In this document: one piece after another, positions 1,018 through 58,905 of the stretch
Numbering within the stretch: position 1 is the first letter of the stretch
Layout: every line of letters starts with the position of its first letter
Source of the DNA: Octopus sinensis
Lineage: Eukaryota
Assembly (NCBI RefSeq): GCF_006345805.1
Contig: NW_021833032.1
Span: forward strand, 107,516 to 171,515
Length of the DNA stretch: 64,000 nucleotides
Direction of reading: 5' to 3'
Translations under genes and position numbers: made by a program
Notes under the pieces: generated by a model
What the model was told of the DNA's origin: nothing
Databases searched by the model: none
The model's input: only the letters and a program-made list of their open reading frames with translations

Positions 1018-1187
1018 TGATCTAAGAAACAATAAAGATATGATGTGTGGATGTCACCTGCCAGCCTTGGTAAATTATACTAAATCAAAATTCAGCAGAA
1101 CTGTGTGGGTCGACGGCGAGTGTCAGACAGATCCAGGCAATAACCAAAGCAAAATTATACCTATAATGAAATACTCGCAATGTCAAA
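1018..1187 (+). CDS. aGPCR exon: last LRR strand plus LRR C-terminal cap (LRRCT)
   Basis: atttcag|...|GTTAGT, phase 2 to 1. Translation [56 protein letters not shown] has the xLxxN..CxCxL...C...C four-Cys pattern of LRRCT. Missed by the ORF track. Confidence 0.7.
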
Positions 1188-1947
1188 GTTAGTAAAATCT
1201 TCCTTGTTTTTGTTATTTAATTATTAGCACTAACAACGTCGGCGAGTTAACACAATCGTTGGCCCGCCGGACAAAACGCCCAGCAACATTTCGTGCAACG
1301 TTACAGTCATAGTTCAAACTCCGTCCAGAACGATTTTGCTTTTAACCCACTCGGGATCGATAACATAAGAATCACTTGAACGCTGTGGTCGATGTAATCA
1401 ACTAAATCTCTCCACACAATATTTCAGGCCATGTGCCTAATTGCCATAAAGAGAACTCGGGATATTCTCTCCTGCTCATAATATGTATGTAAATATATAT
1501 ATGTACACATACATACCCACACATACACACACATATACAGAGTGGCTCTGTGGTAAGAAGCTTGCTTCCCAACCAAATGGTTCCGGCTTTAGTACCACTG
1601 CATGACACCGTCCGACTAAGGCCTTGTGAGTAGATTTGGTAGAGGGAAACTGAAAGAATCCCATCGTGTATATACATATATATGAGTGTGTGTGTGTTTG
1701 TCTATCTGGGCTTGTCCCACTCACCATCGCTTGATAGCCGATGCTGGTGTGTTTACATCCCCGTAACGTGGCTGTTCGTCAAAGTAAACCGACAGAATAA
1801 GTACTAGGCTTACAAAGAATAAGATATGGGATCGATTTGTTCGACTAAAGGCGGTACTTTAGCATGGTCGCAGTCAAATAACTGAAACAAGTAAAAGAAT
1901 AAAGAATAAGAGAGTATAAAACACACAGGCACACGCACAGACACATG

Positions 1948-1997
<50 letters not shown>

Positions 1998-2019
1998 CAT
2001 ACATATATTAAATATATAT

Positions 2020-2068
<49 letters not shown>

Positions 2069-2612
2069 TATATATTATATATATATATGAATAAAAAATG
2101 GAGTTAACGCAGGTTTAAACAAGTATTTTTACTTTCTACATATGTTTCAAAAATTCCACTGATACTTATTCAAAAGAATAAAAGGTATAAACATTGCAAT
2201 CTTCTCTTCGGGAAAGTGAAAAAACGAAACTTGTCAATACGACATTTTAGCAAAAAATGATGGATTCGTATAGCGATAGACAGAACGCTATTAATATCGT
2301 TTAAAAAAACGTTATATGATATAACGTCATAAGTAGCTAACAGAAAGAGTAGGGATATTAATAGTGAATGTTAAATATAAAGGAAATTAAAGTCTAAACT
2401 ATATATAATGATAGAGACTACTTATATGCACTAAAAGTATGTTTCTGCCAATGCTTACATCTGTATGCTCGTTCTATAACCGTGTTTACTAGAGTATTTT
2501 TAGAAAAAATAATGAAAAATAGCTCAGAATTGCAGGGAAGACAGAATTTCTTGCCTTTGTAACTATTCATTCATTTATCCGTGTTAATTGTTAACAAGGT
2601 AAAATAAACTCA

Positions 2613-2697
<85 letters not shown>

Positions 2698-3114
2698 AAT
2701 ATTAGGGAATAAATCCAAATTTACAGGGAAAAAATCAGATTTAGGATTAAATCCAATTTTATAGTAAAATATTATATAATATTAATTCGAGACAAAACCA
2801 CTATTTTGCAAATCAAACAAGGAAAGACTTAATCAATACATAAAAAAATTTAATATAAAGTAAATAAACCGCCATTACAATTGTTTCATGTCTTCAAATG
2901 ACATTCGTCAGGTGGATTTCCGATCTTCTAATCAGTTTTAATTTATGAAGTCCATAAATTAAAACTGATTAGAAGATCGGAAATCCACCTGACGAATGTC
3001 ATTTGAAGACATGAAACAATTGTAGTGGCGGTTTATTTACTTTATATTAAATTTTTTTATGTATTGATTAAGTCTTTTCTTGTTTGATTTGCAAAATAGT
3101 GGTTTTGTCTCGAA

Positions 3115-3155
<41 letters not shown>

Positions 3156-5576
3156 TGGTCTCGCCCCACACAACGGTCCTCCACAATCCAGGCTTCACTT
3201 GGAGCAACGATTCATTTTCACTCTACAGACCCCACACGGACCCAACACAGCCCCTCCTCTTAGTTACTGCGCTCCACCTCTCCCCACTAGCAATTTTTTA
3301 TATTTTTTTACTTTATTATTATTATTTTTTTATATATATTTTTTGATATTTTGTCCTTATACAGAAACATATACACACACATACTCACGTATCCACGAAC
3401 ACATACTTCCAACACACCACACAAATACAACATACATGCACATGTACACACACATACTTCCACACCTATACATACACCCACACAACCATACGCGCACACA
3501 CACATGCCCGTGCACACACACCAACAGACAATACTCATACAGATACGCAAACACTTATAAACACCTAGCAGAGACACACACACACACATACACGCAAGTA
3601 AGCGCACACACGCACACAAGCACACGCATGTACATTACGCCCACACAACTCCAAGAAACCCCCCACACACGCATAAATTAACACACACACATACACATAC
3701 ATACATACATACACACACATACATACATACATACATTCATACATACATACACACACATACACACATACACACATACACACACATACACACATACATACAT
3801 ACATACATACATACATACATACACACATACATACGCACATACATGCATACACACATACACACACACATACACACATAAACTCATACATACATACACACAC
3901 ATACACACATACACACATACACACATACATACATACATACATACACACATACATACATACATACATGCATACACACACATACACACATACATACATACAC
4001 ACACATACATACACATATACATACATACACACATACATAGATACACATACATACACACACACACATACACACATACACACATACACGCATACACACATAC
4101 ATACATACACACACATACATACATACATGCACACACACAAACACACATACACACATACATACATACACACATACACAGACACACACATACATACATACAT
4201 ACACACATACATACATACATACATACACACACACATACACACAAACATACATACATACATACATACACACATACATACATACATACATACATACACACAT
4301 ACATACACACATACATGCATACACACATACACACACACATACACACATACATTCATACATACATACACACACACATACACACATACACATATACACACAC
4401 ATACACACATACATACATACATACATACACACATACATACATACATACATGCATACACACACACATATACACACATACATACATACACACATACATACAC
4501 ATATACATACATACATAGATACACATACATACACACACACACATACACACATACACACATACACGCATACACACATACATACACACACATACATACATAC
4601 ACACACATACACACATACACACATACATACATACATACACACATACACAGACACACACATACATACATACATATACACATACATACATACATACACACAC
4701 ACATACACACACATACATACATACATACATACACACATACATACATACACACATACATACACACATACATGCATACACACATACACACACATACACACAT
4801 ACTTTCATACATACACACACACACATACACACATACACACATACACACACACATACACACATACATACATACATACATACACACATACATACATACATAT
4901 ATGCATACAGACACACACATACATACATACACACACACATACACACATACATGCATACATACAACACACATACATACATACATACATGCATACACACACA
5001 CACATACACACATACATACATACACACACATACATACACATATACATACATACATACATAGATACACATACATACACACACACATACACACATACACACA
5101 TACACGCATACACACATACATACACACACATACATACGTACATACACACACATACACACATACACACATACATACATACAAACACACATACACATACACA
5201 CATACATACATACATACACACATACATACATACATACATACACACACATACACACACACATACATACATACATACATACATACACACATACATACATACA
5301 CACATACATACACACATACATGCATACACACATACACACACATACACACATACTTTCATACATACATACACACACATACACACATACACACATACACACA
5401 CACATACACACATACATACATACATACATACACACATACATACATACATACATACATACATGCATACACACACACACATACACACATACATACACACATA
5501 CATACACACACATACACACATACACACATACATACACACATACACACATACACAGACACACACATACATACATACA

Positions 5577-5607
<31 letters not shown>

Positions 5608-13226: not shown

Positions 13227-16200
13227 CTGTGTGTCTGTGTGTAGTTTCTCCTGATGACCCCACAAGCCTGCTAGTTTCCAGTATTATCAGTGTCTTTTTC
13301 CGAACCGCTAGGTTATGGCGAGGTAAACACAGCAACATCAGTTGCCAGAAAATTTTAATGACATTCATAGATTTTATAAAGGAGTTCATTCTACAAAAAC
13401 ATAAATCACCAGTTTAGCATTATTTCCCTTTATTTGAGTTGTTCCACAATTTTCGCGCTTTTTGTGAGAGCAAAATACAAATAGAAAAGACCATCAAATA
13501 GCTTCCATAGTATTCTTCGTTGAATTTCTAACAACTGAAATAATTGTAAATGAAAGTCGTAACATGCTCTTATAGTCTTCATTAATAATTTTCTTTAAAT
13601 ATCTCACATGTATTGATTCCAACCTTAACACTTTTACATTTGGTTTACACCACAAAGTGTTTATTTCCTCTTATTCTTATACATTACATATTTGGTTCCT
13701 AATACGAATATTTTTGTATTGTATAGATTACTCGTTATTTCAACGCAATTTGCAGTGTCAAACATGTTCAGCTTTTACGTGCAAGGAATCAGAAATGACA
13801 AACTGTATAGGCGATGAGGTAAGCTGAAATGTTACATTCTTCTTTTTAATATACACTTAACCCTCACTTAAAGCCAATATGGCTACGTAACCTGTCCCAA
13901 GATTTAGCAAGTTGTTATAGGTGCCCATGAAATCGTAAGTAGATACATACATCCTCTCAGTCTTTCCATCCTTGAATCAGCAGAACATAGATTAGTGGAA
14001 TGTGTGAACATACGTGTCTTGGAGTCAGCTTGGAAGCTTGTTCAGGGACCTCCGATCGCATGACTTATGAGATATTCCTGTATCTTAGAATTTTCGTTTG
14101 AACGATGGCTATGTTATCAGGCAAGTCACTGATTTCAAAGTACGGGCAGTTATTCTCCACATCTGTGCTACCAGATGCTCCACAACGATGTTCTGAAAGC
14201 AATGCATTCGTACAGTGAAGGTGGTATTCCCAGTTTAGTAGTTGTGTGATACCTCTGTGTGAAGGGGGATCGATTTCTCAGGGCATCAGAAAGTTTTCCT
14301 AGGGAACCCTCGATCTCAATTAGGTGAATTTGAAACTGCACTTTATACACAAGGCTGTGTGAGAGTAATGCAAAGAAGGGGCTACAGAGAACATCGAAAT
14401 CCTGCTTTAACGGTTCCAGGGGTCTATAGATTTACGACTGGATTTTACTGATGTAACTGTACAGACTCGGAGCATCCCAGATTGGTCATCTTAATCGGAT
14501 CTTGAAAGAGTGTTAGGCCAGCAGATAAGGATAGTGTAGGATACCCTTAGTTTGAAGTGGAAGTTGGACGTGTGTCTTCGAACTTGCAAAGATTACAGGG
14601 GTTACACTAATAAATTTGTGAAGCAATACAATAGTTGAAAGGGATTATCATCCACGACCAGTGGTAGTGCGTCCTTAAAGGGACGAAGAGGACATTTAAG
14701 TTAAAGAGCGTTTAGCGAAGTGCTATCGATAGGGTCCACGCAGAGATATGAAGCTTTCCCACAGCATTTCGTTCATCTGTTCGGGACAGGCAATGGATCG
14801 GAGACAGTAGTGTTCTGCAGTACTTATATCGATGGACTATCGGCAGATGTGAAATGTAGCGAGAAGCCGATTACATCATTTGAAATATTGAGAGCAATAG
14901 ACTCTTGCACAAGGCGTAAATAGTCCAGTTTGGATGGTCTGCCTTTCAGGTTTTAGTAATACATGCCAGACGAAATCATTCTGCAGTCACTCGTTCAATG
15001 TCCGGATATTGCTGATTTGTGGAGTTATGATAAACAACTCCTGTCTGATGGGGGACGGTTCTGGCTATCAACCGAGTACAGCATGATGAATGCTCCGCCA
15101 CCAAACTTTAATCAGAGTAGGGAAAGTAGTTTTCCTCTGTCTGGTGACTATAACGAAGGAGGTTGAGTGTAAGATGTAAGTTATGAGTTCTAAGACATTC
15201 CTCTTTTGGTCGACGCCTCATTGACCTCTTCAAGATTCAATTACGAAATAAATTGTGTGTGGAGAGGAAGGTGCTGTCCATAAGTGAATTTATTGAAAGG
15301 TTGGTGAAAACGGTTGACGTTGCAAGAGCGAATGGCACTGCTCTAAACGTATAGACCCGTGTGACGGAAGAAAATTAATTGGAGAGGGCAGTTGCCCTTA
15401 ATATTCAGGGTGAGGTTGGATGGTGGGGTTCTTCGATTGGTTCCAGAGGTCCTCCTTCATTACGAGGATCACATCACCATCGTCTTTAAACTCGTATGCC
15501 ATTCTCTTTTATATTGTATACCGTGCATGCTTATTTGCATATATTTACGATTCCATTCTATGAGCATCCACACACTTTATGTCTTTATTTGTATTGGTCA
15601 CTCATCAGTCGCCCATTACCAAAATACAAAAATGATTATTACAATCATTATTATTGGGATAAATCCAACTTTACCAGAAATAATTACTTCACGTTTTTTT
15701 TAAAGTTTATAAATTATTAAGACGTCAGCAACATAGAATTTTCGCTGAAAACAATAAAGTTTCTAAAACGGGTAGAGAGATGCGAAGGATTGCCTTGGTC
15801 TGATGTTACAACACCAATCATGATAACAGGAGATGTGGGTTCGAATTCCGCAGGTAGCCTCCGACACCATTTTTATCCAAAGGGTTTTCTAAACCAATAT
15901 TAATACTCTATTATTTATAGCTTGCCTAATTCAAGATTCATCGTTTCAAGAAAGAATTATCAAGAAGTGTGATGTTTTTCAGTGATTCTTCATGATCTGG
16001 GATATTTTCTCTCCAACTTTTATGCGAATATTGTGTATCTTCATTTTATTGCAATAGAATATGCATGCCGAGGAGAAGCATATACTACACCTTTTTTTCC
16101 CCAAAACCTAAGTGTTTAAGTCCAGCCCTTTTTTTGATTATCCTTATTTACGGCAGTTACCGCTGCGCTTGTTTCTGTTGTTGCTGAGGTTCACACCTAA

Positions 16201-38959: not shown

Positions 38960-38994
<35 letters not shown>

Positions 38995-39061: not shown

Positions 39062-39096
<35 letters not shown>

Positions 39097-42000: not shown

Positions 42001-42918
42001 CTCACTTAAGACTAGCAGCATCTTGCCTTAGTACTTCATTCACCATATTAGTCCATCCTAACTTGAATTTTAAAAGTCGCAACAAAATATAACGAATAAA
42101 AGCAGATTTGGCAATATTTTTTAAATCTAACTTTTAGTAAGAAGATATTTTACATTGGTTTTGATGATGAAATGGTGGAGTAAATAATAGATTACTGACA
42201 AAATACATCACAGTATTTAACTTTGTTTCACTAGATTATGAGTTCAAATCACGATAAGGTCAATGTTTTTCTCACTCGATGAAATATACATGCTTATTTA
42301 TATAACGGACAATATTTGATATTTATCTTTCAGTTCCTCCGGAAATGTGGCACAACTAGAAATGCCAACAAATCAGTATGGCACATCACGAAAATGTTCA
42401 CCATTCACTGGCGTCTGGCAAAAACCAGACATGTCTCAATGTTACAATACAGAGAGGATCACCCAACAACTAAAGAACATCACAATCGTAGACATCGGTA
42501 AAGGTGAGTGTTTGGAAATGCTCTTAACGTAGTATTAGTAAATGTGAGGGCGCGTGGCTTAGTGGTTAGGGCATTCGGCTCATGATCGTAAGGTTGTGAG
42601 TTCGATTCCCGGCGACGCGTTGTGTCCTTGAGCAAGACACTTTATTTCACGTTGCTCCAGTCCACTCAGCTGGCAAAAATGAGTTGTACTTGTATTTCAA
42701 AGGGTCAGCCTTGTCACTCTCTGTGTCACGTTGATTATCCCCGAGAACTACGTTAAGGGTACACGTGTCTGTGGAATGCTCAGCCATTTGCACGTTAATT
42801 TCACGAGCAAGCTGTTCCGTTGATCGTATCAGCTGGGACCCTCGTCGTCGTAACCGGCGGAGTCTTTAAGTATTAGTAATAACAGTAACAGCAGTAACAG
42901 GAGGGGTATATATATATA

Positions 42919-44641: not shown

Positions 44642-45602
44642 AAGAAGAAGAAGAATGGGAACAACAACATGAAAAGACGAAGAATTGATGATGATGATGA
44701 TAGTGATGATAAAGAAGCAACAACTGCAGCTGTAGCAGCAGACGTAGTAGAAACAATAGTAGCATAAATAGATTTATTAATCAATATAATTAGGGTAATT
44801 ACACTTATATCTAATTACGTATTTGAAACACACTCTTAGTTGAGATTTATTTTCTTGATTTTCTCACAGAATGCTGGACATTATAGAAGCAATCCTGGAA
44901 GAGATTCCACTGGAAGGGCAGCAACTCACAGCTTTATATTCTAATCTTGGTATTGGTGTTATCAAAGTGGAGAAGGACACGTTCAATGGGGCTGTCTATG
45001 GTATTTCATTTGGAAATAATGAAACTGAAGCAAAGACAATGGTACAGTACTTTCTCATGATTTCTCACTTATTAACAGTTTGTTCTAAACACCCAAATTG
45101 ATAAAATATATTACAGTGAAATATAATATCTTTATTATCATATAAAGTAGCGATGGTATAAATCTTGATGCAGATTACAATCCAAATACAAAATAAAATA
45201 TATATGCTGCACAGATTAGCAATAAAGCTAAAATAAGAATAATTTCTAATTTAGGTACAAAGCTCAAAGTTTTGGGGAAGGTGTCCAGTTGACTGCACCA
45301 ACACCAATTGCCAGTTAAATCTGAACTTAGAGCGTAAAGACAGACGAAATGCTGCTTTTTGTCCGGCGGTCTAACTGTTCTGTCAACTCACTGCCTTTAA
45401 AGATTGCATAATAATAGAGGCTTATATGCATAAAATTGATCTTCCTTATCTTCCTGATCCTTTGATTCATCAGAAAAATACAGCAGTAGATTGATGGCTG
45501 TTTCATCTATATATGTACAATGGCCAAAATAAGTGTAAGACTGATGATGATATTCCTTCATGAATATATTTTTAACAAAACTCAGTGAATATACTTCACT
45601 GG

Positions 45603-45641
<39 letters not shown>

Positions 45642-48221
45642 TGTGTATATTTAGGGCTAAAATTTTGTCCGGCGATCTAACTGTTCTGTCAGCTCACTGC
45701 CTTTAAAGCTAACATAATAGGAGCTTAAATACATAAAATAGACCTTCGCTATCTTTCTGGTGTAGAAGTAGGTTGATGGTTGTTTCATCTATATATATAT
45801 GTATATACATTTATATATGATATATGTGTATAGATATACGTAAGAATATATCATCATCATCATCATCATTATCATCATCATCATTTTTATCATCATCGTC
45901 GTGGTTGTCGTAGTCGGCGTCTTCCTTATCATCATCATCATTACTTAACGTCTGTATTCCATATCGACATGGGTTGAACGGTTCGACAGGATCTGAGTAC
46001 CATGAAGACTAAATTGAGCTCCAGTGCTTACTTTGGTAAAGTTCTGTGGATAGATGCATTTCTCACTGTCGAACACTTTATAGAGTGTACTGGGCGTTTT
46101 CCCTAGCACCAGCAGTAGTGAGGTTACCATATAATTCGCAAAAGAAGATCCCTTGACATATTGGGGTTGCAGCATTGAGGGAGGTGTCTTTGTGCCAATT
46201 GCTGAGAGGCTGAATTATGATAGACGCACCAGAACGGGTGTCTGGCTGTAAAGGAGATACATGGCTATAACAGCAGGAAATAGAGAAAGAATAGTGAAGA
46301 TGATGTGTCAGGAGTATATATATATACATGTTTATATATATATAGATATATATGGGTAAAATATTGAGAAGTAAGTAATGAATAAATATGATAACAATTG
46401 TGAGAGAATCAATTCTATAAACATATACCAGACGTTGTTGCTATCGAACATAGTGAGAGGAATAATTGTGTGAATGGGTAATTATGTGTTACTATGTGAG
46501 TGTGTGTACCTGGCTGTGTATATGTGTGCGTCTCGTTACAAAACGTTTCGGAAATATATGCTAGCAAATGGATGTCATTGTTTGAAAAGATTGAGATACA
46601 AATAGTTTTATACAACATACTGCTATTTTCATGTCCTTGGTTACCCAAGAACAAGAAGTAGATTCAGAAAAAATATCACTGTATGCATTAATGAGAAGTT
46701 AACCAACGACGGAAATCCAATTTGCACCTGTGTGAGATAGGTGTATTGAGTGGTAAAAGGCGGCGAGCTGGCAGAAGCGTTAGCACGCAGGGTGAAATGC
46801 GTAGCCGTATTTCGTCTGCCGTTACGTTCTGAGTTCAAATTCTGCCAAGGTCGACTTTGCCTTTCATCCTTTCAGAGTCGATAAAATAAGTACCAGTTAC
46901 GCACTGGCGTCGATGTAATCGACTTAATCCATTTGTCTGTCCTTGTTTGTCCTCTCTGTTGAACCTCTTGTGCCTAGTAAAGAAATAGGTATTTCATCTG
47001 CCGCTACGTTCTGAGTTCAAATTCCGCCGAGGTCGACTTTGCCTTTCAAACTTTTGGGGTCGATTAAAACAAGTACCAGTAACGCACTGGGGTCGATATA
47101 ATCGACTTAATCCGTTTGTCTGTCCTTGTTTGTCCTCTCTGTTTAGCCCCTTGTGGGTAGTAAAGAAATAGGTATTTCGTCTGCCGCTACGTTCTGAGTT
47201 CAAATTCCGCCGAGGTCAACTTTGCCTTTCATCCTTTCAGGGTCGATTAAATAAGTACCAGTTACGCACTGGGGTCGATATAATCGATTTAATCCATTTG
47301 TATGTCCTTGTTTCTCCTCTCTGTGTTTAGCCCCTTGTGGGTAGTAAACAAATAGGCATTGGGTGATAATGGTACTTTTAGCATTTCTGTTAATTGTAAT
47401 GGTATAACAATGTAGTAATTGGGGAAGAAGTAGAAGTTACAACAACAACAATAGTAACAATCATAGTAATAATTCCGTTTTTTTTAACGTTATAGATAAT
47501 CATACCGAAATATTGGATTGAAAACTCCTTTTGGGAAGGAAATTACAAGGCAGACTAAGGAACTGTTTTCTAGCTAACAGAGTATAATCAATCCACTATT
47601 TTTGCATTTCGAAATACATTATTCCAAAACAGAATCATTTAGCATTCTCTCAAAAGTTTATAAATTCTTATGATGACAAGTTGTAGTAGTAATTTATTAT
47701 TTATCAATTTCATTTCTTTTCCTTTCATTTTCTTCCATCAGATACATAATTACTCAAATCCAGACCCACAAGTAGAAGATACAGGGAACTTCATTTCATT
47801 ACCAAAGAGTTTATTTAAACAGCTGAAAGAAGAAGAACGATCAACAATTTCAAGGATCGCATTTTTCTCCCTGAAGGATGATAAGCTATATAGGGTATGG
47901 AACCAAAACTGAAATCTGTCTTTCTCCTTGATAACAATACTAATATACCACATCTACAAATGGCTATGTATACATACATATATACACATGTAAATATATG
48001 CGTATGTGTATGCCATTTAGGATGCATATACAAACGCAGAACAGCTGACGTTTTGAATTTGGCCTCGGAGAAACTTCTGCTAAGAGATTGAGTGTGTTCA
48101 AAGCAAATGACAAAACGGAATTATAAGACACCGGTGTTTTGGACTGATTTAGCTTCCTTAGTCATTATGAGTGAATTCAGAATCATTGCTCTAATATGGA
48201 AATCAGCAAAGATAACATATG

Positions 48222-48434: not shown

Positions 48435-51400
48435 TTTGAATATCCTTCCTTTGAGGAAGGAACTGGTTTCTCAAAATGATACAAGGTCCCATATTTGGAA
48501 TGTAAATAAGAGAAACAGATTCATATTTTAAACTTGAGAAGAAATTTTGAACTTTTTTACTGATCACTTACAAATTTCTAAGCAGATTGGTAAGATGCGG
48601 CTTAGCTTCTCGGATACTCATAAGCGGGTTTTTGAATGATTTCAAATACTAAATGCATCTGACAATTATTTTGTCAACCAGAGCTGTGGTAGAAATCACC
48701 TTCACAATATGCTATTCAGTGAGATTGAACATCGTCTTCCAGCGAGGTTCTTACGCTTTTGAGGCGCTCGTGCTACTTGGGACATTTCGTATGACCCATT
48801 GCTTTGCTCCTGGGAGTTTGCCGAAGAATGCTCAGTCTTTCTATAGCAGAAGTCGCAAGTTTAAGGAAACATTTCGCTTTGGTTGTTTGTTCCTGTCTAT
48901 GACAAAAACGCAGACTACACCATACACGTGATCGCAAGTATAGAAGTTTCACAACTTGCGAACTAAACACAGCGATGTCACTCGGAACATTGCCTCATGA
49001 AGGCCACTGCTAGCTCTTAGTGCACATGCAACCAAGTGCTGCCAGCTGCTGGTGTGCTACAGAACTAATCGGGGGACATTTTTGATCCGCCTCATATTAA
49101 ATACTTCTATTGAATAAATTAGTTTAATTAATGACACCTCTTTACAGGTAATACAACACTCCAGGACCAAAGCAAATACTAAAATTAACAGTCACATTAT
49201 TGCCGCAAATGTTCCTAACATTCAAATAACCAACCTCGATGAACCAGTTAATATCTCCTTCAGACCAATAGATCAGGTAAATGCTATCGATTTATTATAA
49301 CTGTTGTTTTGTGTTGTTAATGTTTCATTTCGAGGCCATATCTCTTGTTTCCCCGAAAAAAACATGGTGGTAGTAGTAGCAATAGTAGTTATTGCTGTAG
49401 TTGTTGCTGTGTTGTGAGTTTCAACTTGTATGTTTTATAATGTAAACATTGCGTGATGACGGAGATATTCTTTATTTCATTCCAAAATATGCTTCAGGTT
49501 GTTTGTATCGTATTCTCGTATCACCAACGAAACCTTTTAATATATTTCTGTATTAGCTTCATTTTATTGTGTCCGTGTATTTTAAGAGTGAATTACTTTG
49601 GGGTCTCATATTGTGACTCTTGTTGCTGTTTATTTTCATGCCATTCCTGGCCCAGTTAATCCATGAATGTTTTATCCAATTAATTATCCTTATATATTTC
49701 TAGAACTGCACTGTCCAATGTCTTCTACATTTAGAGGCGAGGGGTGTAAATTACGTGAATATACATAGATTTATAAACGAGATGAAAGAGTCAGTTAAGC
49801 TATGTCACAGACGGTGATGTCGGATTCAAAATGGGAATTTCAACCGTGTTTCGTGGTCTGCTACCACAAGAGCTCCTTTATAGGATCCAGTTAGCTCAAG
49901 ACATCATCAGGAGGAACCACGTCCGGTTTCGGCCCCTACTCCTAAACCATTTTGACGTGGCGGGGCCCCCTTTCGGAGTTGTCTTCAGCTCTTGTGTTGG
50001 GTGCATGTCTTCTTTCTTCTGTTCCCTCGCCTCTTCGATGTAGCGTCAACGAGTCTCAGCGGGCGACTGATTGTCTTGTCAATTTTTTCCCTTTAAATAC
50101 CTGCTGCTAGACTCCAGCAGGCAGCCCCAGAAAGTTGTCACGTGACACTGTCTCAACTTTAAATGACCAATGAAGGCGCGTAGTTTCAGCCCTCGCATTC
50201 TCTAAACGACGCTGTCATCTGTCAATCTGTAATCAAACATTGTCGACCATAATTTATTTTGATGTTTTGTTAATGAAATTAGTTAAGATTTATTTCATGA
50301 TTAAATTACCAGAATATGTTTTTCAGAATGCCACCAACCTACGGTGTGTTTTTTGGGATGAATCTCCTGGACAGAATCCTAAATGGTCAACAGAAGGCTG
50401 TAATATGTCCGAGTATGTACCTGGAAAGAAAGTACTTTGTTCCTGTAACCATCTGACAAGTTTTGCCCTATTAATGGTTGGTAAGATTATGACAACCTAT
50501 TAATTACCTCTAATTGAGCTGCTTATGTCTATGTATAAATAATTTTAACGCACACCAGACACTCTGTTGGTGGATATTTTGGTAAATATGTTAGTTTAAT
50601 AGCAAATATATGAGGTTGAAATTTAATAATAATTCACTGTTGTTGTTGTTGCTGTGGTTGCTGTTTATTAGTTTAAACTTAAGATGGCGCTTTATCATCC
50701 TCAACAAAATACATGAGAATTCCTCCTGCATTGAAGTGAAGAGGAATCGAGAGAGATGGTCACCTGGCCTGACTGTACAAATCTGTTATGTTGAAACCAC
50801 CTGAATGGTCGTCTAGTTGATAGAGATGTATTTAAGATATGATGACCCTCCGTAGCTCAATAAACATGTTGACAGCTTAGATATTAAACCCTTGGTCTTT
50901 CATGATCCTGTTATATGGACTCTCCTTATATTTATGCGATTTCTTCTACTGATGCTTTTTTACATCCATACTACACATGTATCCACCACTTGTTACTTAT
51001 ATAACACTTCTGCCGCCCACAAAATAACATATGCACCTATCTATGGCACATATTTTAGCCTACATGATTTTTTAATTAATTCAAATTGCTAGTTCACTCC
51101 ATACCAGTTTCCAATATCACCCGACGCCACAAGAACCGAGATTAAATCGTCAAGTCACTGATATTGCGTCTATCTTTGTCAGTTTTTATCAGAAACATTA
51201 CAGAATCAATTCACTTGTTGTCTTTATTAATGTTTTCATTTCTCTAATTCTTCGTTACGAAAATAATTTCAATTTCCCATTTCTTCCTCTATCTAAATAT
51301 TCATTCTTCACATACTCCGTGTAATATATTGACCCAAAATTAGACGAACAACCTATCGAAAATGCTGTCATATCTATTTTATCATGACTCATAATCTATA

Positions 51401-54400
51401 GTATCCATGGCCAAAACATATTTGAAGTGGACACGTCCTCTTGTTAAAGAATACTGCTTTATGTAAAGGAAACTGAATCATACAGCATCAAGGTCTACTG
51501 GTGGAATATTGATCTTAATCTACTTTGTGTTAAAGGAATGAGAAAGAAATAACACCGGTCTATCTCAGGTGAGATATGGCTTAAGTGAAGCAACCTCAGT
51601 TAGCTGGACTGATAAAATATACGAAGCCATCTTAATTGCATTTGAACTAAAAATCTATGAGTTGGTGGTACATCTCATACTTTTCGTTACACATCCCATA
51701 TATACATAATGAATTCGGTGAAACTGTCTCTCATCCAACATGCAATGTAAGACGGCCCTTTATTAATATTGTCATTAAGGCAGCTTACACATACCCCACA
51801 TCAACACTTTATACACTCATAATTTATATAATTATTGACCGACATAGAAAGGAATGGTAGGAAGAATTAATACGTTGTTGTTTGTTTCTGTTGCAGGATG
51901 TCTACCAGAAATCGGGGGGGAAAACTAGTCACCTCTTATCTATTACATCTTACATTGGCTGCGGAATATCATTTGTCTGCCTCATTCTTACAATAATAAT
52001 TCATGTTTGTTCCAAGTAAGAATTTCATTTTCTATTTTCTTTTATAATCTGTTTAAATACGCGACATCCATCAGTTTATGGGATTCTGACAGACTGGTAA
52101 GATCGAAGTGGTTGATATCTGCAAGAAAAACCATGGATGAGGAGAGAATTCCCGAACGTTGTCACTCCCATGGGTGATTGATTGAAGAAATATTTTAGGG
52201 CAAATTTGTGTACCACATTAAGGGTAATAAAAAAGAAAGCAAGAACGGATAGGGAGCACTATCCTGTGTTTGAGTAGAGTTAGGTTATAGCTTGAGAATT
52301 TAGAAAATTATTGACGAATATAGTAGTTACAGTAGTGCATCTATCTTTACTATTACTAAAATAACAGTCGGTGTTTTTTTATACTGTTTGTTAGTGAGCG
52401 TGGAGGCGCAATGGCCCAGTGGTTAGGGCAGTGGACTCGCGGTCGTAGGATCGCGGTTTCGATTCCCAGACCGGGCGTTGTGAGTGTTTATTGAGCGAAA
52501 ACACCTAAAGCTCCACGAGGTTCCGGCAGGGGATGGTGGTGATCCCTGCTGTACTCTTTCACCACAACTTTCTCTCACTCTTACTTCCTGTTTCTGTTCT
52601 ACCTGTATTTCAAAGGGCCAGCTTTGTCACTCTCTGTGGCACGCTGAATATCCCCGAGAACTACGTTAAGAGTACACGTGTCTGTGGAGTGCTCAGCCAC
52701 TTACACGTTAATTTCACGAGCAGGCTGTTCCGTTGATTCGGATCAACCGGAACCCTCGTCGTCGTAACCGACGGAGTGCTTAAAGAAGAAAGAAAAATAG
52801 TTATTGAGCAGGTTGTGGTAATGTGTTGGTGAGTTAACATTTGCCATTCAACCAAATGATCTAGTTTTCGGTCTGATTGAGAATCCATTGTGTGTGTGTA
52901 TATACATACATCGGTCTACATACATACATACATCCCTACCTACCTACCTACCTACCTACCTACCTACCTACCTACATACATACATATATACATACATGCA
53001 TATATGCATATATGTATACATACATTCAAACATACATATGAAAATACGATCATGCTTACACATATCACAGATACAATTCTTCATTCATACGTAACTACAT
53101 ACATTACATCATCCCGTATGTAATAATATTTACATATATTCATACATACATTCAAACATACATATGAAAATACAATCATGCTTACACATATCACAGATAC
53201 AATTCTTCATTCATACGTACTACATACATTACATCATCCCGTATGTAATAATATTTACATATATTCATACATACATTCAAACATACATATGAAAATACGA
53301 TCATGCATACACATATCACAGATACAATTCTTCATTCATACGTAACTACATACATTACATCATCCCGTATGTAATAATATTTACATATATTCATACATAC
53401 ATTCAACATACATATGAAAATACGATCATGCTTACACATATCACAGATACAATTCTTCATTCATACGTAACTACATACATTACATCATCCCGTATGTAAT
53501 AATATTTACATATATTCATACATACATTCAAACATACATATGAAAATACGATCATGCATACACATATCACAGATACAATTCTTCATTCATACGTAACTAC
53601 ATACATTACATCATCCCGTATGTAATAATATTTACATATATTCATACATACATTCAAACATACATATGAAAATACGATCATGCATACACATATCACAGAT
53701 ACAATTCTTCATTCATACGTAACTACATACATTACATCATCCCGTATGTAATAATATTTACATATATTCATAGATACATTCAAACATACATATGAAAATA
53801 CAATCATGCATACACATATCACAGATACAATTCTTCATTCATACGTAACTACATACATACATCATCCCGTATGTAATAATATTTACATATATTCATAGAT
53901 ACATTCAAACATACATATGAAAATACGATCATGCATACACATATCACAGATACAATTCTTCATTCATACGTAACTACATACATTACATCATCCCGTATGT
54001 AATAATATTTACATATATTCATAGATACATTCAAACATACATATGAAAATACGATCATGCATACACATATCACAGATACAATTCTTCATTCATACGTAAC
54101 TACATACATTACATCATCCCGTATGTAATAATATTTACATATATTCATACATACATTCAAACATACATATGAAAATACGATCATGCATACACATATCACA
54201 GATACAATTCTTCATTCATACGTAACTACATACATTACATCATCCCGTATGTAATAATATTTACATATATTCATACATACATTCAAACATACATATGAAA
54301 ATACGATCATGCTTACACATATCACAGATACAATTCTTCATTCATACGTAACTACATACATTACATCATCCCGTATGTAATAATATTTACATATATTCAT

Positions 54401-57400
54401 ACATACATTCAAACATACATATGAAAATACGATCATGCTTACACATATCACAGATACAATTCTTCATTCATACGTAACTACATACATTACATCATCCCGT
54501 ATGTAATAATATTTACATATATTCATACATACATTCAAACATACATATGAAAATACGATCATGCATACACATATCACAGATACAATTCTTCATTCATACG
54601 TAACTACATACATTACATCATCCCGTATGTAATAATATTTACATATATTCATACATACATTCAAACATACATATGAAAATACGATCATGCTTACACATAT
54701 CACAGATACAATTCTTCATTCATACGTAACTACATACATTACATTACATCATCCCGTATGTAATAATATTTACATATATTCATACATACATTCAAACATA
54801 CATATGAAAATACGATCATGCTTACACATATCACAGATACAATTCTTCATTCATACGTAACTACATACATTACATCATCCCGTATGTAATAATATTTACA
54901 TATATTCATACATACATTCAAACATACATATGAAAATACGATCATGCATACACATATCACAGATACAATTCTTCATTCATACGTAACTACATACATTACA
55001 TTACATCATCCCGTATGTAATAATATTTACATATATTCATACATACATTCAAACATACATATGAAAATACGATCATGCTTACACATATCACAGATACAAT
55101 TCTTCATTCATACGTAACTACATACATTACATCATCCCGTATGTAATAATATTTACATATATTCATACATACATTCAAACATACATATGAAAATACGATC
55201 ATGCTTACACATATCACAGATACAATTCTTCATTCATACGTAACTACATACATTACATCATCCCGTATGTAATAATATTTACATATATTCATACATACAT
55301 TCAACATACATATGAAAATACGATCATGCATACACATATCACAGATACAATTCTTCATTCATACGTAACTACATACATTACATCATCCCGTATGTAATAA
55401 TATTTACATATATTCATACATACATTCAAACATACATATGAAAATACGATCATGCATACACATATCACAGATACAATTCTTCATTCATACGTAACTACAT
55501 ACATTACATCATCCCGTATGTAATAATATTTACATATATTCATACATACATTCAAACATACATATGAAAATACGATCATGCATACACATATCACAGATAC
55601 AATTCTTCATTCATACGTACTACATACATTACATTACATCATCCCGTATGTAATAATATTTACATATATTCATACATACATTCAAACATACATATGAAAA
55701 TACGATCATGCTTACACATATCACAGATACAATTCTTCATTCATACGTAACTACATACATTACATCATCCCGTATGTAATAATATTTACATATATTCATA
55801 CATACATTCAAACATACATATGAAAATACGATCATGCATACACATATCACAGATACAATTCTTCATTCATACGTAACTACATACATTACATCATCCCGTA
55901 TGTAATAATATTTACATATATTCATACATACATTCAAACATACATATGAAAATACGATCATGCTTACACATATCACAGATACAATTCTTCATTCATACGT
56001 AACTACATACATTACATCATCCCGTATGTAATAATATTTACATATATTCATACATACATTCAAACATACATATGAAAATACGATCATGCATACACATATC
56101 ACAGATACAATTCTTCATTCATACGTAACTACATACATTACATCATCCCGTATGTAATAATATTTACATATATTCATACATACATTCAAACATACATATG
56201 AAAATACGATCATGCTTACACATATCACAGATACAATTCTTCATTCATACGTAACTACATACATTACATCATCCCGTATGTAATAATATTTACATATATT
56301 CATACATACATTCAAACATACATATGAAAATACGATCATGCTTACACATATCACAGATACAATTCTTCATTCATACGTAACTACATACATTACATCATCC
56401 CGTATGTAATAATATTTACATATATTCATACATACATTCAAACATACATATGAAAATACGATCATGCTTACACTATCACAGATACAATTCTTCATTCATA
56501 CGTAACTACATACATTACATCATCCCGTATGTAATAATATTTACATATATTCATACATACATTCAAACATACATATGAAAATACGATCATGCTTACACAT
56601 ATCACAGATACAATTCTTCATTCATACGTAACTACATACATTACATCATCCCGTATGTAATAATATTTACATATATTCATACATACATTCAAACATACAT
56701 ATGAAAATACGATCATGCTTACACATATCACAGATACAATTCTTCATTCATACGTAACTACATACATTACATCATCCCGTATGTAATAATATTTACATAT
56801 ATTCATACATACAAAGACACAGAAAGTTAAGAAAAGCGCCTTGGGCCTTGTGCTGAGCCAGCGCTATCACTATTCATAATAACAGACTCGCAAAACCCTC
56901 CTGCAAGACTATGGCACGGTGCTTTGTAATGAATCCTTTATATTTATATACAGAGCAAAAATTTAGATTCAGAAGAATATGGTTCTTAAGTTGAGGCACC
57001 AGAATTTAGTACGGTATTATCCATACAGTTTCAAAGTGAGGTGATTGCAATCAAAATAAACAACAAGGATATCCAAAGTAATGCAGTACGACCGTTTCAT
57101 GCAACTCAATTTAATTGAACAATGTAATCATTACATCAATTTAAAATGCAGTGCAATCTTCAGCTGCACAAAGACATAGAATTTAATTAAATTTGAAAAG
57201 ATGGACACATTAGTATAATTATAGCCAAAATCTCCAAGAAGTTAAGGAGACAGACAACGAACATGTCTCTACTTCAGCATGGGAGATTTTAGCTAGAGAT
57301 AAAAATCCCAATGATCTTCAGTGTTATTGCCTGCATGTCCGTTTTATATTAGTGAGATCCTGTTTTAGAGACAAGCTTTAACGAAAACTAAGCGACGCCT

Positions 57401-58654: not shown

Positions 58655-58905
58655 CGATTTAACATACCGTTTGTCTTCAAATAATCATCATACACACAGT
58701 CGTAGTTATTACTTACATACTAAGAAGGTTTTTTAGCTATATTTCATTGAATTATTATTATTTATTTTGGGATTATTTCAGAAATGTATGGAAATCAATG
58801 GCTTCAAAGATTTTGGTAAACTTGTGCGTTTCTTTGGCTATCACTAATTTGATCTTTCTTGTTGGGATGCAACCGTATGCCTCAAAAATAACAGCTGCTT
58901 GTAAG
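1018..58905 (+). CDS. Multi-exon adhesion GPCR gene (partial: LRRCT - Ly6/uPAR three-finger - SEA-like - HormR - GAIN/GPS - TM1-TM2); start and TM3-7 outside window
   Basis: 14 hand-assembled exons with AG/GT boundaries and matching phases at every junction (2|1|0|1|2|1|2|1|2|0|0|0|0|2|0). Diagnostic GPS motif CVFWD...WSTEGC...[13 protein letters not shown] is followed by TM1 [18 protein letters not shown]. Linkage of the 5' exons (1018-33316) to the GAIN exons rests on phase compatibility and domain order only. Confidence 0.85.
1540..1905 (+). mobile_element. tRNA-derived SINE (family 1), diverged
   Basis: Collinear similarity to 58156-58558 (gagtggctgtgtggtaag...gaaactgaaagaagccc...gaataagtact...gactgaaacaagtaaaagaata). 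Confidence 0.8.
1948..2090. repeat. (TA)n microsatellite (one of many; others at ~2617-2693, 11020-11410, 12335-12400, 12820-12890, 23665-23740, 48255-48430, 58590-58650)
   Basis: Direct inspection. Confidence 0.95.
2132..2216 (-). ncRNA. Hammerhead-like motif with U4C core change and extended stem II
   Basis: Minus strand CTTTC-CCGAAGA-GAAGATT...AATTTTT-GAAA-C(ATAT)G-TA|GAAAG. 5-bp stem I, palindromic ACATATGT stem III, core CCGA instead of CUGA. Confidence 0.5.
2872..2915 (-). ncRNA. Minimal type I hammerhead ribozyme (A-), one stem I mismatch
   Basis: Reverse complement of A+ except that the 3' strand of stem I reads ATGG instead of GTGG. Confidence 0.65.
2985..3028 (+). ncRNA. Minimal type I hammerhead ribozyme (A+)
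   Basis: CCAC-CTGACGA-ATGTC(ATTTGAA)GACAT-GAAA-C(AATT)G-TA|GTGG. Intact core, stem I CCAC/GTGG, 5-bp stem II, GUA cleavage triplet with predicted cut after 3024. Confidence 0.85.
3680..5605. repeat. Compound (CAYA/CA)n microsatellite, ~1.9 kb
   Basis: Almost pure ACAT/ACAC/AC units. Source of the HTY/CVY ORFs. Confidence 0.97.
6842..6884 (-). ncRNA. Minimal type I hammerhead ribozyme (C-)
   Basis: Minus strand CCAC-CTGAAGA-TTGTC(GATCAA)GACAA-GAAA-C(AATT)G-TA|GTGG. Confidence 0.85.
10804..10846 (+). ncRNA. Minimal type I hammerhead ribozyme (C+)
   Basis: CCAC-CTGAAGA-TTGTC(GATCAA)GACAA-GAAA-C(AATT)G-TA|GTGG, predicted cut after 10842. Confidence 0.85.
12575..12617 (-). ncRNA. Minimal type I hammerhead ribozyme (B-)
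   Basis: Minus strand CCAC-CTGACGA-ATGTC(ATTGAA)GACAT-GAAA-C(GATT)G-TA|GTGG. Confidence 0.85.
12683..12725 (+). ncRNA. Minimal type I hammerhead ribozyme (B+)
   Basis: CCAC-CTGACGA-ATGTC(ATTGAA)GACAT-GAAA-C(GATT)G-TA|GTGG, predicted cut after 12721. Confidence 0.85.
12895..13330 (-). mobile_element. CR1-type LINE 3' fragment interrupted by a microsatellite
   Basis: [40 protein letters not shown] matches the ORF2 C-terminus seen at 31206-31400. Confidence 0.8.
13727..13818 (+). CDS. aGPCR exon: N-terminal half of Ly6/uPAR (three-finger) domain
   Basis: tttgtattgtatag|...|GTAAGC, phase 1 to 0. Translation [30 protein letters not shown] contains the LxCxxC start of LU domains. Confidence 0.75.
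13880..15420 (-). mobile_element. Highly decayed non-LTR retrotransposon remnant (possibly I-group with RNase H)
   Basis: Only blurred motifs ([23 protein letters not shown]) with many stops. GC content is higher than the flanks. Confidence 0.3.
16624..16807 (+). CDS. aGPCR exon: C-terminal half of Ly6/uPAR (three-finger) domain
   Basis: ttgcaacag|...|GTAAGC, phase 0 to 1. Translation [61 protein letters not shown] ends in the CCxxxxCN LU signature. Confidence 0.8.
17690..18262 (-). mobile_element. CR1-type LINE 3' fragment
   Basis: Minus strand reads ...QRRREQYII... and aligns by eye with the 12895-13130 fragment. Confidence 0.6.
18719..18812 (+). CDS. aGPCR exon: first part of SEA-like domain, containing in-frame TAA at 18796-18798
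   Basis: ttttctatcctcccatag|...|GTGAGT. The 94-nt length links phase 1 (16807) to phase 2 (33168). Translation [30 protein letters not shown]. The SEA-like call is a pattern impression only. Confidence 0.55.
19160..20620. mobile_element. Second, AT-rich Penelope-like element remnant with short terminal inverted repeat
   Basis: ~19165-19270 is a diverged inverted copy of ~20465-20575. Contains the 19302-19405 hammerhead. A decayed plus-strand coding-like stretch near 19980-20160 ([40 protein letters not shown]) resembles a PLE ORF N-terminus by impression only. Confidence 0.45.
19302..19405 (-). ncRNA. Type I hammerhead with long stem II insertion
   Basis: Minus strand TAAC-CTGATGA-T-TGGCTATATTTA...TAAATATAGCCA-C-GAAA-C(ACGC)G-TC|GTTA. 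12-bp stem II helix, but a U.C mismatch at the first stem II pair. Confidence 0.6.
21450..21800 (-). mobile_element. Gypsy-type LTR retrotransposon integrase remnant
   Basis: [22 protein letters not shown]...[26 protein letters not shown] matches the YHPxSNGxxER...YRxTP...SPAELxxGR integrase signature. Confidence 0.85.
22195..22320 (+). mobile_element. LTR-retrotransposon reverse transcriptase fragment
   Basis: (L)DD then, frameshifted, [24 protein letters not shown], typical of the RT region after YxDD. Confidence 0.55.
22329..22495 (+). mobile_element. tRNA-derived SINE (family 1), 3'-truncated
   Basis: aggcgcaggagtggctgtgtggtaag...ccgggttcagtcccactg head shared with 58156. Confidence 0.8.
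22600..23490 (+). mobile_element. 3' fragment of a HERO/R2-group LINE (restriction-like endonuclease)
   Basis: LKHILS...YKWGH (decayed CCHC finger region), then MDII...[17 protein letters not shown]...[14 protein letters not shown] matching the PD-E-K REL pattern. Confidence 0.75.
23880..25680 (-). mobile_element. R4/Dong-like LINE, disrupted (RT plus REL endonuclease)
   Basis: [21 protein letters not shown] (RT), [23 protein letters not shown]...ANRPDII...LLID...KLTKYKD (REL). Many stops and frameshifts. Sequence to ~26270 may belong to its 5' part. Confidence 0.85.
27385..27930. repeat. Imperfect (TA)n tract with (GATA)n, directly 5' of the CR1 LINE
   Basis: Direct inspection. Confidence 0.95.
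27931..31780 (+). mobile_element. Near full-length CR1-group LINE with ORF1 (CCCH finger) and ORF2 (APE endonuclease plus RT), inactivated
   Basis: ORF1 [25 protein letters not shown] motifs ..GDFNLP.. and LSDHN. RT motifs [46 protein letters not shown], frameshifted YADD. (AATC)n tail at ~31759-31780. Confidence 0.92.
31896..32545. mobile_element. MITE / non-autonomous DNA transposon with ~190-bp diverged TIRs
   Basis: 31896-~32091 is the imperfect reverse complement of ~32352-32545. TA dinucleotides at both ends. No coding capacity. Confidence 0.7.
33168..33316 (+). CDS. aGPCR exon: second part of SEA-like domain
   Basis: atcctatttcag|...|GTAAGT, only one open frame (phase 2 to 1): [49 protein letters not shown]. 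Confidence 0.7.
34480..34745 (+). mobile_element. Degenerate tRNA-derived SINE
   Basis: tRNA-like head (gagttcgattc) followed by gttgtgttcttgagcaaagca, related to the body of 42543. Confidence 0.45.
35075..35948 (+). mobile_element. Mariner transposase pseudogene, 5'-truncated
   Basis: [21 protein letters not shown] and PSDYHLF motifs across broken frames. Mariner-like right TIR ...aactttcttgccaaactaata. Confidence 0.9.
37870..38240 (-). mobile_element. Tc1/mariner-superfamily transposase N-terminal remnant
   Basis: [25 protein letters not shown] then frameshifted [13 protein letters not shown], a helix-turn-helix region pattern. Confidence 0.5.
38749..39155. repeat. Compound (CTA)n/(CTG)n trinucleotide repeat
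   Basis: Direct inspection. Includes an internal ~100-bp duplication marked by ctgatgttgtt at ~38930 and ~39032. Confidence 0.95.
39286..39400 (+). CDS. aGPCR exon: hormone-receptor motif (HormR), part 1
   Basis: ttctttttcag|...|GTTCGT, phase 1 to 2: [38 protein letters not shown] (C...WP.T..G....PC...A.R.C pattern). Confidence 0.85.
42334..42503 (+). CDS. aGPCR exon: HormR part 2 and start of GAIN subdomain A
   Basis: ttatctttcag|...|GTGAGT, phase 2 to 1: [56 protein letters not shown] (G.W..PD.S.C motif). Confidence 0.85.
42543..42865 (+). mobile_element. tRNA-derived SINE (family 2a)
   Basis: A box TGGCTTAGTGG and B box AGTTCGATTCC. The 3' ~180 bp is shared with 52395-52782. Confidence 0.85.
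44168..44390 (+). CDS. aGPCR exon: GAIN subdomain A helices
   Basis: ttttcgttgcag|...|GTAAAA, phase 1 to 2: [73 protein letters not shown]. Confidence 0.85.
44420..44745. repeat. Compound (CAG)/(TAG)/(GAA)/(GAT) trinucleotide repeats
   Basis: Direct inspection. Confidence 0.9.
44870..45041 (+). CDS. aGPCR exon: GAIN domain
   Basis: ttttctcacag|...|GTACAG, phase 2 to 0: [57 protein letters not shown]. Confidence 0.8.
45935..46320 (-). mobile_element. Probable RTE-type LINE/SINE 3' tail
   Basis: (CAT)n run followed by ttaacgtctgtattccat...catgggttgaacggtt...gatagatgcattt, resembling RTE-type 3' ends from memory. No coding motif found. Confidence 0.3.
46757..47356 (+). mobile_element. SINE (family 3) with ~182-bp body tandemly triplicated
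   Basis: One head (ggcggcgagctggcagaagcgttagcac) followed by three units beginning atttcrtctgccg at ~46810, ~46991 and ~47173. Confidence 0.85.
47742..47894 (+). CDS. aGPCR exon: GAIN subdomain B
   Basis: long polypyrimidine tract then cag|...|GTATGG, phase 0 to 0: [51 protein letters not shown] (ISLP.SLF motif). Confidence 0.85.
49148..49276 (+). CDS. aGPCR exon: GAIN subdomain B
   Basis: ctctttacag|...|GTAAAT, phase 0 to 0: [43 protein letters not shown] (NS.II.A......I.NL.EPV.I.F motif). Confidence 0.9.
49740..50230 (-). mobile_element. Short LTR/pLTR-like element with TATA-like box and two CTGAnGA...GAAAC motifs
   Basis: Minus-strand TATTTAAA near 50091-50098, palindrome GTCACGTGAC near 50137-50146, and structured GC-rich segment 49835-49995. 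Confidence 0.4.
50327..50476 (+). CDS. aGPCR exon: GPS motif with autoproteolysis site and start of tethered-agonist (Stachel) sequence
   Basis: tgtttttcag|...|GTTGGT, phase 0 to 0: [50 protein letters not shown]. Consensus H-L|T cleavage falls between codons at 50453-50455 and 50456-50458. Confidence 0.95.
51897..52015 (+). CDS. aGPCR exon: TM1
   Basis: tttctgttgcag|...|GTAAGA, phase 0 to 2: [39 protein letters not shown]. Confidence 0.92.
52395..52782 (+). mobile_element. tRNA-derived SINE (family 2b)
   Basis: A box TGGCCCAGTGG and B box TTTCGATTCC. Different body but the same 3' tail as 42543. Confidence 0.85.
53020..56812. repeat. Tandem array of ~30 copies of a 126-bp unit (intronic minisatellite/satellite)
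   Basis: The GAAAATAC landmark recurs at 53040, 53166, 53291, 53416, 53542, 53668 ... 56703. Copies are near-identical. Confidence 0.97.
58156..58558 (+). mobile_element. tRNA-derived SINE (family 1), full length
   Basis: A-box-like TGGCTGTGTGGT and B-box-like GGTTCAGTCT in the head. Matches copies at 1540 and 22329. Confidence 0.85.
58782..58905 (+). CDS. aGPCR exon: ICL1, TM2, ECL1 up to conserved TM3-top Cys
   Basis: attatttcag|...|GTAAGT, phase 2 to 0: [41 protein letters not shown] (I..NLC.SL motif of family-B/adhesion TM2). Confidence 0.92.

Follow-up and report, generated by a model that had tools for sequence, protein, structure and literature searches.

An adhesion G protein-coupled receptor gene of Octopus sinensis with a Ly6/uPAR (three-finger) module in its predicted ectodomain

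Receptor proteins combining a Ly6/uPAR (LU) domain with a seven-transmembrane (7TM) part have been described in the starfish Asterias rubens (Paramonov et al. 2024, PMC11595613). LyAr2 (XP_033635706.1, 'ADGRG2-like') comprises 1113 amino acids (aa) with the LU domain at residues 224-305 and 7 transmembrane helices (TM), while XP_033635539.1 ('ADGRG6-like') comprises 1022 aa with the LU domain at residues 186-244 and likewise 7 TM (PMC11595613). Both were assigned a 'GPCR-like architecture' (GPCR, G protein-coupled receptor) with a single N-terminal LU domain, and the LU domain of LyAr2 was found to be most like human Lynx2 (PMC11595613). In octopus, an octopus-specific expansion of adhesion GPCRs was reported as 'group 3' (Ritschard et al. 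2019, PMC6408891), whose members carry a GPS and an adhesion-type 7TM domain and, in some cases, leucine-rich repeats (LRR). In this study, we analyzed the final 64 kb of the unplaced O. sinensis contig VCDQ01009665.1 (171,515 bp), in the following called the window (64,000 nucleotides (nt); window position 64000 is the contig end), which carries exons of an adhesion GPCR gene with a 12-cysteine module of LU type. Our literature searches found no paper on LU domains in the adhesion GPCRs of octopus or other molluscs. The original prediction for this DNA, made from its letters alone, had seen no precedent for an LU domain in a characterised adhesion GPCR, a view overtaken by the starfish cases (PMC11595613).

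The gene in the window is very probably one member of an octopus-expanded family of 'ADGRG6-like' adhesion GPCRs, represented by its exons from LRRCT to TM2, and the receptor would work like other adhesion GPCRs. From the N-terminus, the ectodomain of this family consists of LRRNT-LRR-LRRCT, one LU domain with 12 cysteines, the SEA-like and then the HormR-like module, and GAIN/GPS; the secretin-type 7TM domain comes next. In the window, 15 receptor exons were located on the + strand, all with AG/GT borders and with phases that agree from exon to exon:

1018-1187, + strand: LRRCT-type cap exon with four cysteines, ending in KYSQCQ; phase 2 in, 1 out; borders AG/GTTAGT
13727-13818 (92 nt), + strand: LU exon a with Cys1-Cys4 and the first finger; phase 1 in, 0 out; borders AG/GTAAGC
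16624-16807 (184 nt), + strand: LU exon b with Cys5-Cys12, ending in CCTGNLCN; phase 0 in, 1 out; borders AG/GTAAGC
18719-18812 (94 nt), + strand: SEA-like module, exon 1; starts in phase 1; donor GTGAGT
26122-26174, + strand: SEA-like module, exon 2; phase 0 in, 2 out; borders AG/GTAAGC; absent from the exon chain of the original prediction
33168-33316, + strand: SEA-like module, exon 3, ending in IELIGE; phase 2 in, 1 out
39286-39400, + strand: HormR-like exon a; matched by paralogs in tblastn
42334-42503, + strand: HormR-like exon b, beginning with CSSGNV; matched by paralogs in tblastn
44168-44390, + strand: first of two GAIN subdomain-A exons; matched by paralogs in tblastn
44870-45041, + strand: second GAIN subdomain-A exon; matched by paralogs in tblastn
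47742-47894, + strand: first of two GAIN subdomain-B exons; matched by paralogs in tblastn
49148-49276, + strand: second GAIN subdomain-B exon; matched by paralogs in tblastn
50327-50476, + strand: GPS exon, starting with CVFWDE, with the canonical HL|T cleavage motif; Pfam GPS
51897-52015, + strand: remainder of the tethered-agonist stalk (DVYQKSG...) and TM1; Pfam 7tm_2 model positions 3-60, E 1.1e-6
58782-58905, + strand: TM2 exon, the final receptor exon in the window; matched by paralogs in tblastn

That the gene encodes an adhesion GPCR, as had been proposed, was borne out by Pfam, which reported GPS on the assembled peptide (E 5.1e-14, 53 bits at a cutoff of 22.5, model residues 550-593) as well as 7tm_2 (E 1.1e-6). 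The GPS stands directly before TM1, and the consensus CSCNHL|TSFALLMDV is intact in the window copy. The GAIN match was weak (E 0.15), and neither on the assembled peptide nor on the LU peptide alone did Pfam give a match to LU, SEA, HormR or LRRCT families. Paralog proteins map exactly onto the proposed exons in tblastn, with an additional exon at 26122-26174 (100% identity to P0005, the NCBI model at this locus, and 72% to P0002); exon 1018-1187 is matched by the paralogs P0002, P0004 and P0013. The original chain of 14 exons, open for 675 aa from 1018-1187 (LRRCT-like) to 58782-58905 (TM2), had to be revised, since it used a non-conserved donor at 18794 and overlooked exon 26122-26174, and since the contig end cuts off TM3-7. 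In the paralogs, LRR repeats precede the LRRCT-type segment, and the LRR exons of this gene must lie upstream of the window. The exons for TM3-7 are absent from the window because the contig ends there and the gene is cut after TM2; in the comparison with paralog proteins, no match to them was obtained downstream of the TM2 exon, and the odd C-terminal tail of the O. vulgaris model P0001 had no counterpart in the window.

The two LU exons join in frame and give a domain with 12 cysteines, running from LQCQTC in exon a over PVCENK at the start of exon b to SCCTGNLCN. This join, already part of the original prediction, was confirmed by the AG acceptors and GTAAGC donors, the tblastn matches of paralogs and the conservation of the cysteines. 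The 12 cysteines vary little or not at all among 19 aligned paralog domains, which start in the form LxCxxC and end in the form CCxxxxCN, and eight cysteines are invariant among 29 diverse sequences. The Pfam LU families UPAR_LY6, Toxin_TOLIP and CD59 gave no match to the window domain even at E<=10, and none of these families exceeded its cutoff in the full-length paralogs scanned; the domain is too divergent for a single-sequence Pfam scan. As Pfam was therefore unable to settle what the module is, family profiles were used. A profile built from octopus sequences only gave seven matches at E<=10 in the PDB, all of them to three-finger proteins; the best one was LYPD1/Lynx2 with E 0.002 over the domain from end to end, and the others were activin receptor type-1 ectodomains, LYPD6, SLURP1 and Lynx1. 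Searched against 1.84 billion representative proteins, the same profile found 36 proteins, including multi-LU proteins of Holothuria and Ptychodera (3e-10, 8e-7) that score above the Pfam cutoffs for CD59, Toxin_TOLIP or UPAR_LY6. With the profile of 29 sequences, LYPD1 was matched in the PDB at 4.9e-8, and 20 of 20 matches at E<=1 were three-finger proteins.

For structure prediction with AlphaFold2, the domain of P0033 was used, which is the closest 12-cysteine paralog found and 77% identical to the domain of the window. A first run with 18 close paralogs reached a predicted local distance difference test (pLDDT) score of only 62.8 with non-significant fold matches and was discarded as evidence. 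With the alignment of 29 sequences, pLDDT was 81.5 and the predicted template modelling (pTM) score 0.73, and the model consists of two beta hairpins, a helix and a C-terminal strand. In a Foldseek search of the PDB, the top 50 matches of this model were all three-finger folds, in agreement with the fold predicted earlier. LYPD1 was again the best match (E 1.9e-3, TM score 0.64/0.68, root-mean-square deviation 2.9 A over 84 columns), followed by uPAR domains, Lynx1, SLURP-2, PSCA, LYPD6, CD59, ectodomains of TGF-beta-family receptors and snake three-finger toxins.

The gene structure fits as well. LU genes typically split the mature domain over two exons (PMC4839075), and the two-exon layout in octopus agrees with that of typical Ly6/uPAR genes. 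One paralog fragment is named 'ly6/PLAUR domain-containing protein 1-like' by NCBI. It is extremely improbable that the module is another small disulfide-rich fold, such as a TNFR-, EGF- or Kazal-like one, whose cysteine pattern merely resembles that of an LU domain. Such a fold would accord with the absence of a Pfam LU family on the window copy, the poor model from the shallow alignment and the modest Foldseek E-values even for the better model (best 1.9e-3), but every PDB match of the octopus-only profile and all top 50 structural matches are three-finger proteins, the alignment to LYPD1 is end-to-end with 12 cysteines in both, and LU genes likewise divide their domain between two exons. 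As far as sequence and structure prediction allow, the assignment of the 12-cysteine module as an LU domain of the LYPD1/Lynx2 type is thus established, as the original prediction of an LU or three-finger module had it. Human LYPD1 (Lynx2) and the octopus module share the number of cysteines, the end-to-end alignment, the three-finger fold and the two-exon domain. LYPD1 and the other single-domain Ly6/uPAR proteins are small, glycosylphosphatidylinositol (GPI)-anchored or secreted and have their own signal peptide, whereas the octopus LU domain is an internal module of a receptor. An LU-fold ectodomain on a larger signaling protein is known from the TGF-beta/activin receptors, where it is carried by a kinase.

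That LU and receptor belong to one chain is evident from the family. A protein search gave 70 matches, all from O. vulgaris, O. sinensis and O. bimaculoides and most of them named 'adhesion G-protein coupled receptor G6-like'. Of the kind of protein that the original prediction had suggested searching for, with both LU and GPS, 30 fetched examples contain an LU domain 450-590 aa upstream of the GPS in a single chain, among them gene models from Octopus, Argonauta and Nucella and intron-free transcript contigs. For O. sinensis, O. vulgaris and O. bimaculoides there are gene models that span the full length and include LRR, LU, GPS and 7tm_2; outside Octopus, the same architecture was found as a full-length model in the gastropod (whelk) Nucella lapillus and in partial form in Argonauta hians, and a scallop fragment contains an LU domain followed by the start of a SEA-like module. 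Furthermore, Logan contigs of 4.2-4.8 kb carry open reading frames (ORFs) that span 1155 and 1305 aa and encode LRR, LU, GPS and 7tm_2. These ORFs are not interrupted by introns and the contigs therefore represent spliced mRNAs; one of them (SRR21372857_4053, 4.2 kb, ORF at 452-3919), probably from another cephalopod, encodes a complete LRR-LU-GPS-7TM receptor of 1155 aa. The layout LRR-LU-SEA-like-HormR-GAIN-7TM is real, expressed and not specific to octopus. Thus, the receptor is not lineage-specific in the sense proposed earlier: the window holds one copy of a large Octopus family, and the architecture also occurs in Argonauta and Nucella. A search of a word-indexed protein database with the LU profile added only four further Octopus fragments.

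At three paralogous loci, the NCBI models P0071, P0072 and P0073 comprise only 151-160 aa, consisting of the LRRCT exon, the LU exons and a read-through of the LU donor; P0072 is named 'LYPD1-like'. Such stand-alone models, ending at the same donor read-through, and the omission of the LU exons from the NCBI model of the window locus would be expected if the LU exons, alone or together with the LRRCT exon, formed a separate small Ly6-like gene inside a receptor intron. We regard this as highly improbable, since the short models begin at an internal LRRCT methionine (MMCGCHLP...) and lack the signal peptide that a secreted or GPI-anchored LU protein requires, the LU exons are phase-compatible on both flanks, and LRR, LU, GPS and 7TM lie within one ORF in thirty proteins and in the intron-free transcript contigs. 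The short models look like annotation fragments of receptor genes.

The receptor gene also shows how its ectodomain may have been assembled. The LU exon pair, the three SEA-like exons and the two HormR-like exons each form a module flanked by phase-1 introns. Some members have tandem LU copies, two or three in number (P0049, P0040 and P0075 from O. sinensis / O. vulgaris), and the unit of SEA-like and HormR modules is repeated in P0001, P0033 and P0048. The duplication or deletion of whole phase-1 modules among paralogs fits 1-1 exon shuffling and supports the phase-1 shuffling that had been suggested for this gene. The position of the LU domain between LRRCT and the SEA-like/HormR/GAIN part and its phase 1 on both flanks were as predicted; the prediction overlooked the frame defect of exon 18719-18812, which is one base short.

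The core of the receptor is of ADGRG2/G6 type. The profile of the family from GAIN through 7TM matched ADGRG2 (3e-114) and ADGRG6 (8e-107) in the PDB, followed by ADGRG4, L3, G3, D1 and E5, so that vertebrate ADGRG6/GPR126 and ADGRG2/GPR64 are closest in the GAIN and 7TM core among the solved structures. The complete 7tm_2 domain is present in paralogs with E-values from 1e-33 to 1e-47, while the window holds only TM1 and TM2. The ectodomains differ: ADGRG6 and ADGRG2 have neither LRR nor LU, and the CUB and pentraxin domains at the start of ADGRG6 are missing from the octopus family, with no match to them in Pfam scans of its full-length paralogs. In ADGRG6, a SEA-HormR-GAIN series adjoins the membrane. 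In the octopus family, the SEA and HormR modules named in the original prediction received sub-threshold Pfam matches, with SEA in 3 of 14 members (best 1.3e-5) and HRM in 12 of 14 (best 1.5e-4), and in no case a match above the cutoff; a profile of the SEA-like and HormR region found nothing in the PDB.

At the N-terminus, Pfam found LRR families in the full-length paralogs and LRRNT in one of them. ADGRA2/3 (GPR124/125) resemble the family in having N-terminal LRR and LRRCT followed by HormR, GAIN and 7TM, but carry an immunoglobulin (Ig) domain where the octopus family has the LU and SEA-like modules, and the ADGRA domain order is not found in the family. Outside molluscs, the closest adhesion GPCR in a database search with the full-length family profile was a protein of Acanthaster named 'ADGRA3-like' (LRR-Ig-HormR-GAIN, no LU), with 8e-81 over 53% of the profile and 24% identity. 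Judged by sequence, the core is ADGRG2/G6-like and not clearly ADGRA. Resemblance to ADGRA at the N-terminus is confined to the LRRs, the feature for which the original prediction had named the ADGRA group.

Several points weigh against reading the window as an intact receptor gene of this layout. Besides the missing Pfam matches to LU families and the sub-threshold status of SEA and HormR, the structure model is that of a 77% identical paralog domain, and its alignment contained recognised LU proteins. At this very locus, the joining of LU and GAIN exons is a prediction from genomic DNA. The NCBI model from O. sinensis, P0005, has 99% identity to the window but a length of only 395 aa. It begins at the methionine of exon 26122-26174, continues past the 49276 donor until a stop codon at 49297 and lacks the LU, GPS and 7TM exons. 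In addition, exon 18719-18812 has 94 nt versus 95 in the paralog reading, so that it begins in frame 0 and ends in frame 2. In the paralogs, the segment after the LU domain continues into MEHELSNLTG..., and the two ends of the exon, when joined, equal the paralog segment in length residue for residue. The simplest site for the missing base is the run of five A at 18765-18769, where six are needed. The alternative donor at 18794 (GTAAAC) gives an open frame, but it is not used by paralogs, drops 25 conserved residues and was rejected. The defect may be either a real frameshift in a decaying duplicate or a homopolymer or assembly error.

A further point against an intact gene comes from the sister copy L003 (5342-19014 of VCDQ01001849.1, another unplaced contig), which is annotated by NCBI as two genes. 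This copy is without the SEA-like exons, with LU spliced directly to HormR, has duplicated GAIN exons and carries glycine in place of LU Cys3. The coding sequence common to the window and L003 amounts to 918 bases, in which 26 differences are nonsynonymous and 3 synonymous (P 0.10 versus neutrality); the LU exons contain 13 nonsynonymous differences and no synonymous one (P 0.05 versus neutrality). Neither P value marks a significant departure from neutrality. At the level of these sequences, the differences show no purifying selection and could stem from a relaxation of constraint or from diversifying selection.

It is quite possible, if not the expected outcome, that the window copy is a non-functional duplicate (a pseudogene or gene fragment) which has inherited the layout and from which the receptor is no longer made. 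The one-base defect, the short NCBI model, the location on an unplaced 171-kb contig, the sister locus with its lost SEA exons, doubled GAIN exons and Cys3 exchange, the ratio of 26:3 that is indistinguishable from neutral, and the annotation of many family members as fragments all speak for it. On the other hand, none of the 12 LU cysteines is lost from this copy, its GPS motif is intact and its splice sites are all preserved; its sole defect is one base in an A run, which is typical of long-read assembly errors. The absence of TM3-7 is accounted for by the contig end. The nonsynonymous excess would also be expected under diversifying selection, and positive selection has been reported for the octopus expansion (PMC6408891).

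The DNA surrounding the exons is AT-rich, repeat-laden and of animal type. Between the exons for TM1 and TM2, a satellite at 53000-56813 takes up a large part of the intron; it has a unit of 126 bp and a higher-order period of 377 bp, is present in about 30 copies and is very regular (98% identity). Long simple repeats lie in the introns, such as (ACAT)n over about 1.9 kb at 3695-5606, and further long repeats at 27384-27931, 38748-39078 and 46807-47360 consist of (AT)n, (TAC)n and three copies of a 183-bp unit. Remains of transposons, in which every ORF is fragmented, were located at 28165-31616 (+), 35084-35776 (+) and 60603-63399 (-). Two of them gave matches to the reverse-transcriptase domain RVT_1 (3e-21 at 29972-30850; 2e-8 at 61823-62119, - strand), and a helix-turn-helix fragment of a Tc3/mariner-type transposase lies at 35084-35377.

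The starfish proteins and the mollusc family are alike in the position of the LU domain, in length, in their naming after ADGRG2/G6 and in the Lynx2/LYPD1 type of the LU domain, the starfish side being known by description. They differ in phylum, and no large expansion has been reported in starfish. A search of a word-indexed protein database with the full-length family profile was dominated by LRR proteins, for example slit, chaoptin and Toll-like receptors, and the LU receptors of starfish were not among its matches; the link to echinoderms therefore comes from the published account (PMC11595613) alone. A shared origin of the mollusc and starfish LU receptors is plausible by analogy. In a wider view, we see about an even chance that receptors of the type LRR-LU-...-GAIN-7TM are ancient in bilaterians, being common to molluscs and echinoderms and lost in vertebrates.

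The 70 Octopus matches agree with the published description of group 3, a likeness by description and not sequence by sequence. Group 3 genes were described as co-localised recent duplicates with enrichment in sucker, skin and axial nerve cord and with signs of positive selection (PMC6408891). InterProScan reported only GPS, 7TM, LRR and one Death domain for this group, and no LU, SEA-like or HormR domain (PMC6408891). By analogy, the published tissue enrichment (PMC6408891) points to neural or sensory contact functions for the family.

By analogy with other adhesion GPCRs, the LRR and LU modules may bind a partner on another cell, in the matrix or in cis. GAIN would cleave itself at HL|T, and the N-terminal fragment with LRR, LU, SEA-like and HormR modules would be held non-covalently. 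Force or a ligand-induced change may then expose the tethered agonist TSFALLMDV, by which the 7TM domain would be switched on. The finger loops of the LU domain would be the most likely surface for contact with the partner, and it is also there that the window copy and the sister copy differ. Lynx proteins bind nicotinic-type receptors in mammals, and the chemotactile receptors of octopus suckers are derived from nicotinic receptors. Because of the LU subtype, the tissue pattern of the expansion (PMC6408891) and the preponderance of nonsynonymous differences between the LU exons of the two copies, binding of the LU finger to Cys-loop (nicotinic-type) receptors, including the sucker chemotactile receptors, was considered, although we rate it as very unlikely. 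If it were true, a fast-diversifying receptor family enriched in sucker and arm nerve cord would couple touch-taste channels to G-protein signalling.

The gene is not a system of a new kind, and the copy studied here may be non-functional. Its value lies in the family: a receptor family that ranks among the most expanded in octopus contains an LU module that is invisible to InterPro/Pfam scans, and since it was missed by these standard scans, published accounts of the expansion give only LRR, GPS and 7TM. A three-finger domain of the Lynx2 type would be a concrete candidate for a binding module in ligand tests. Domain shuffling is visible in this family, with phase-1 modules duplicated (up to three LU), deleted (members without SEA) and diversified between recent duplicates. 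The possible link between octopus and starfish suggests an old type of adhesion GPCR that was lost in vertebrates, rather than an invention of cephalopods.

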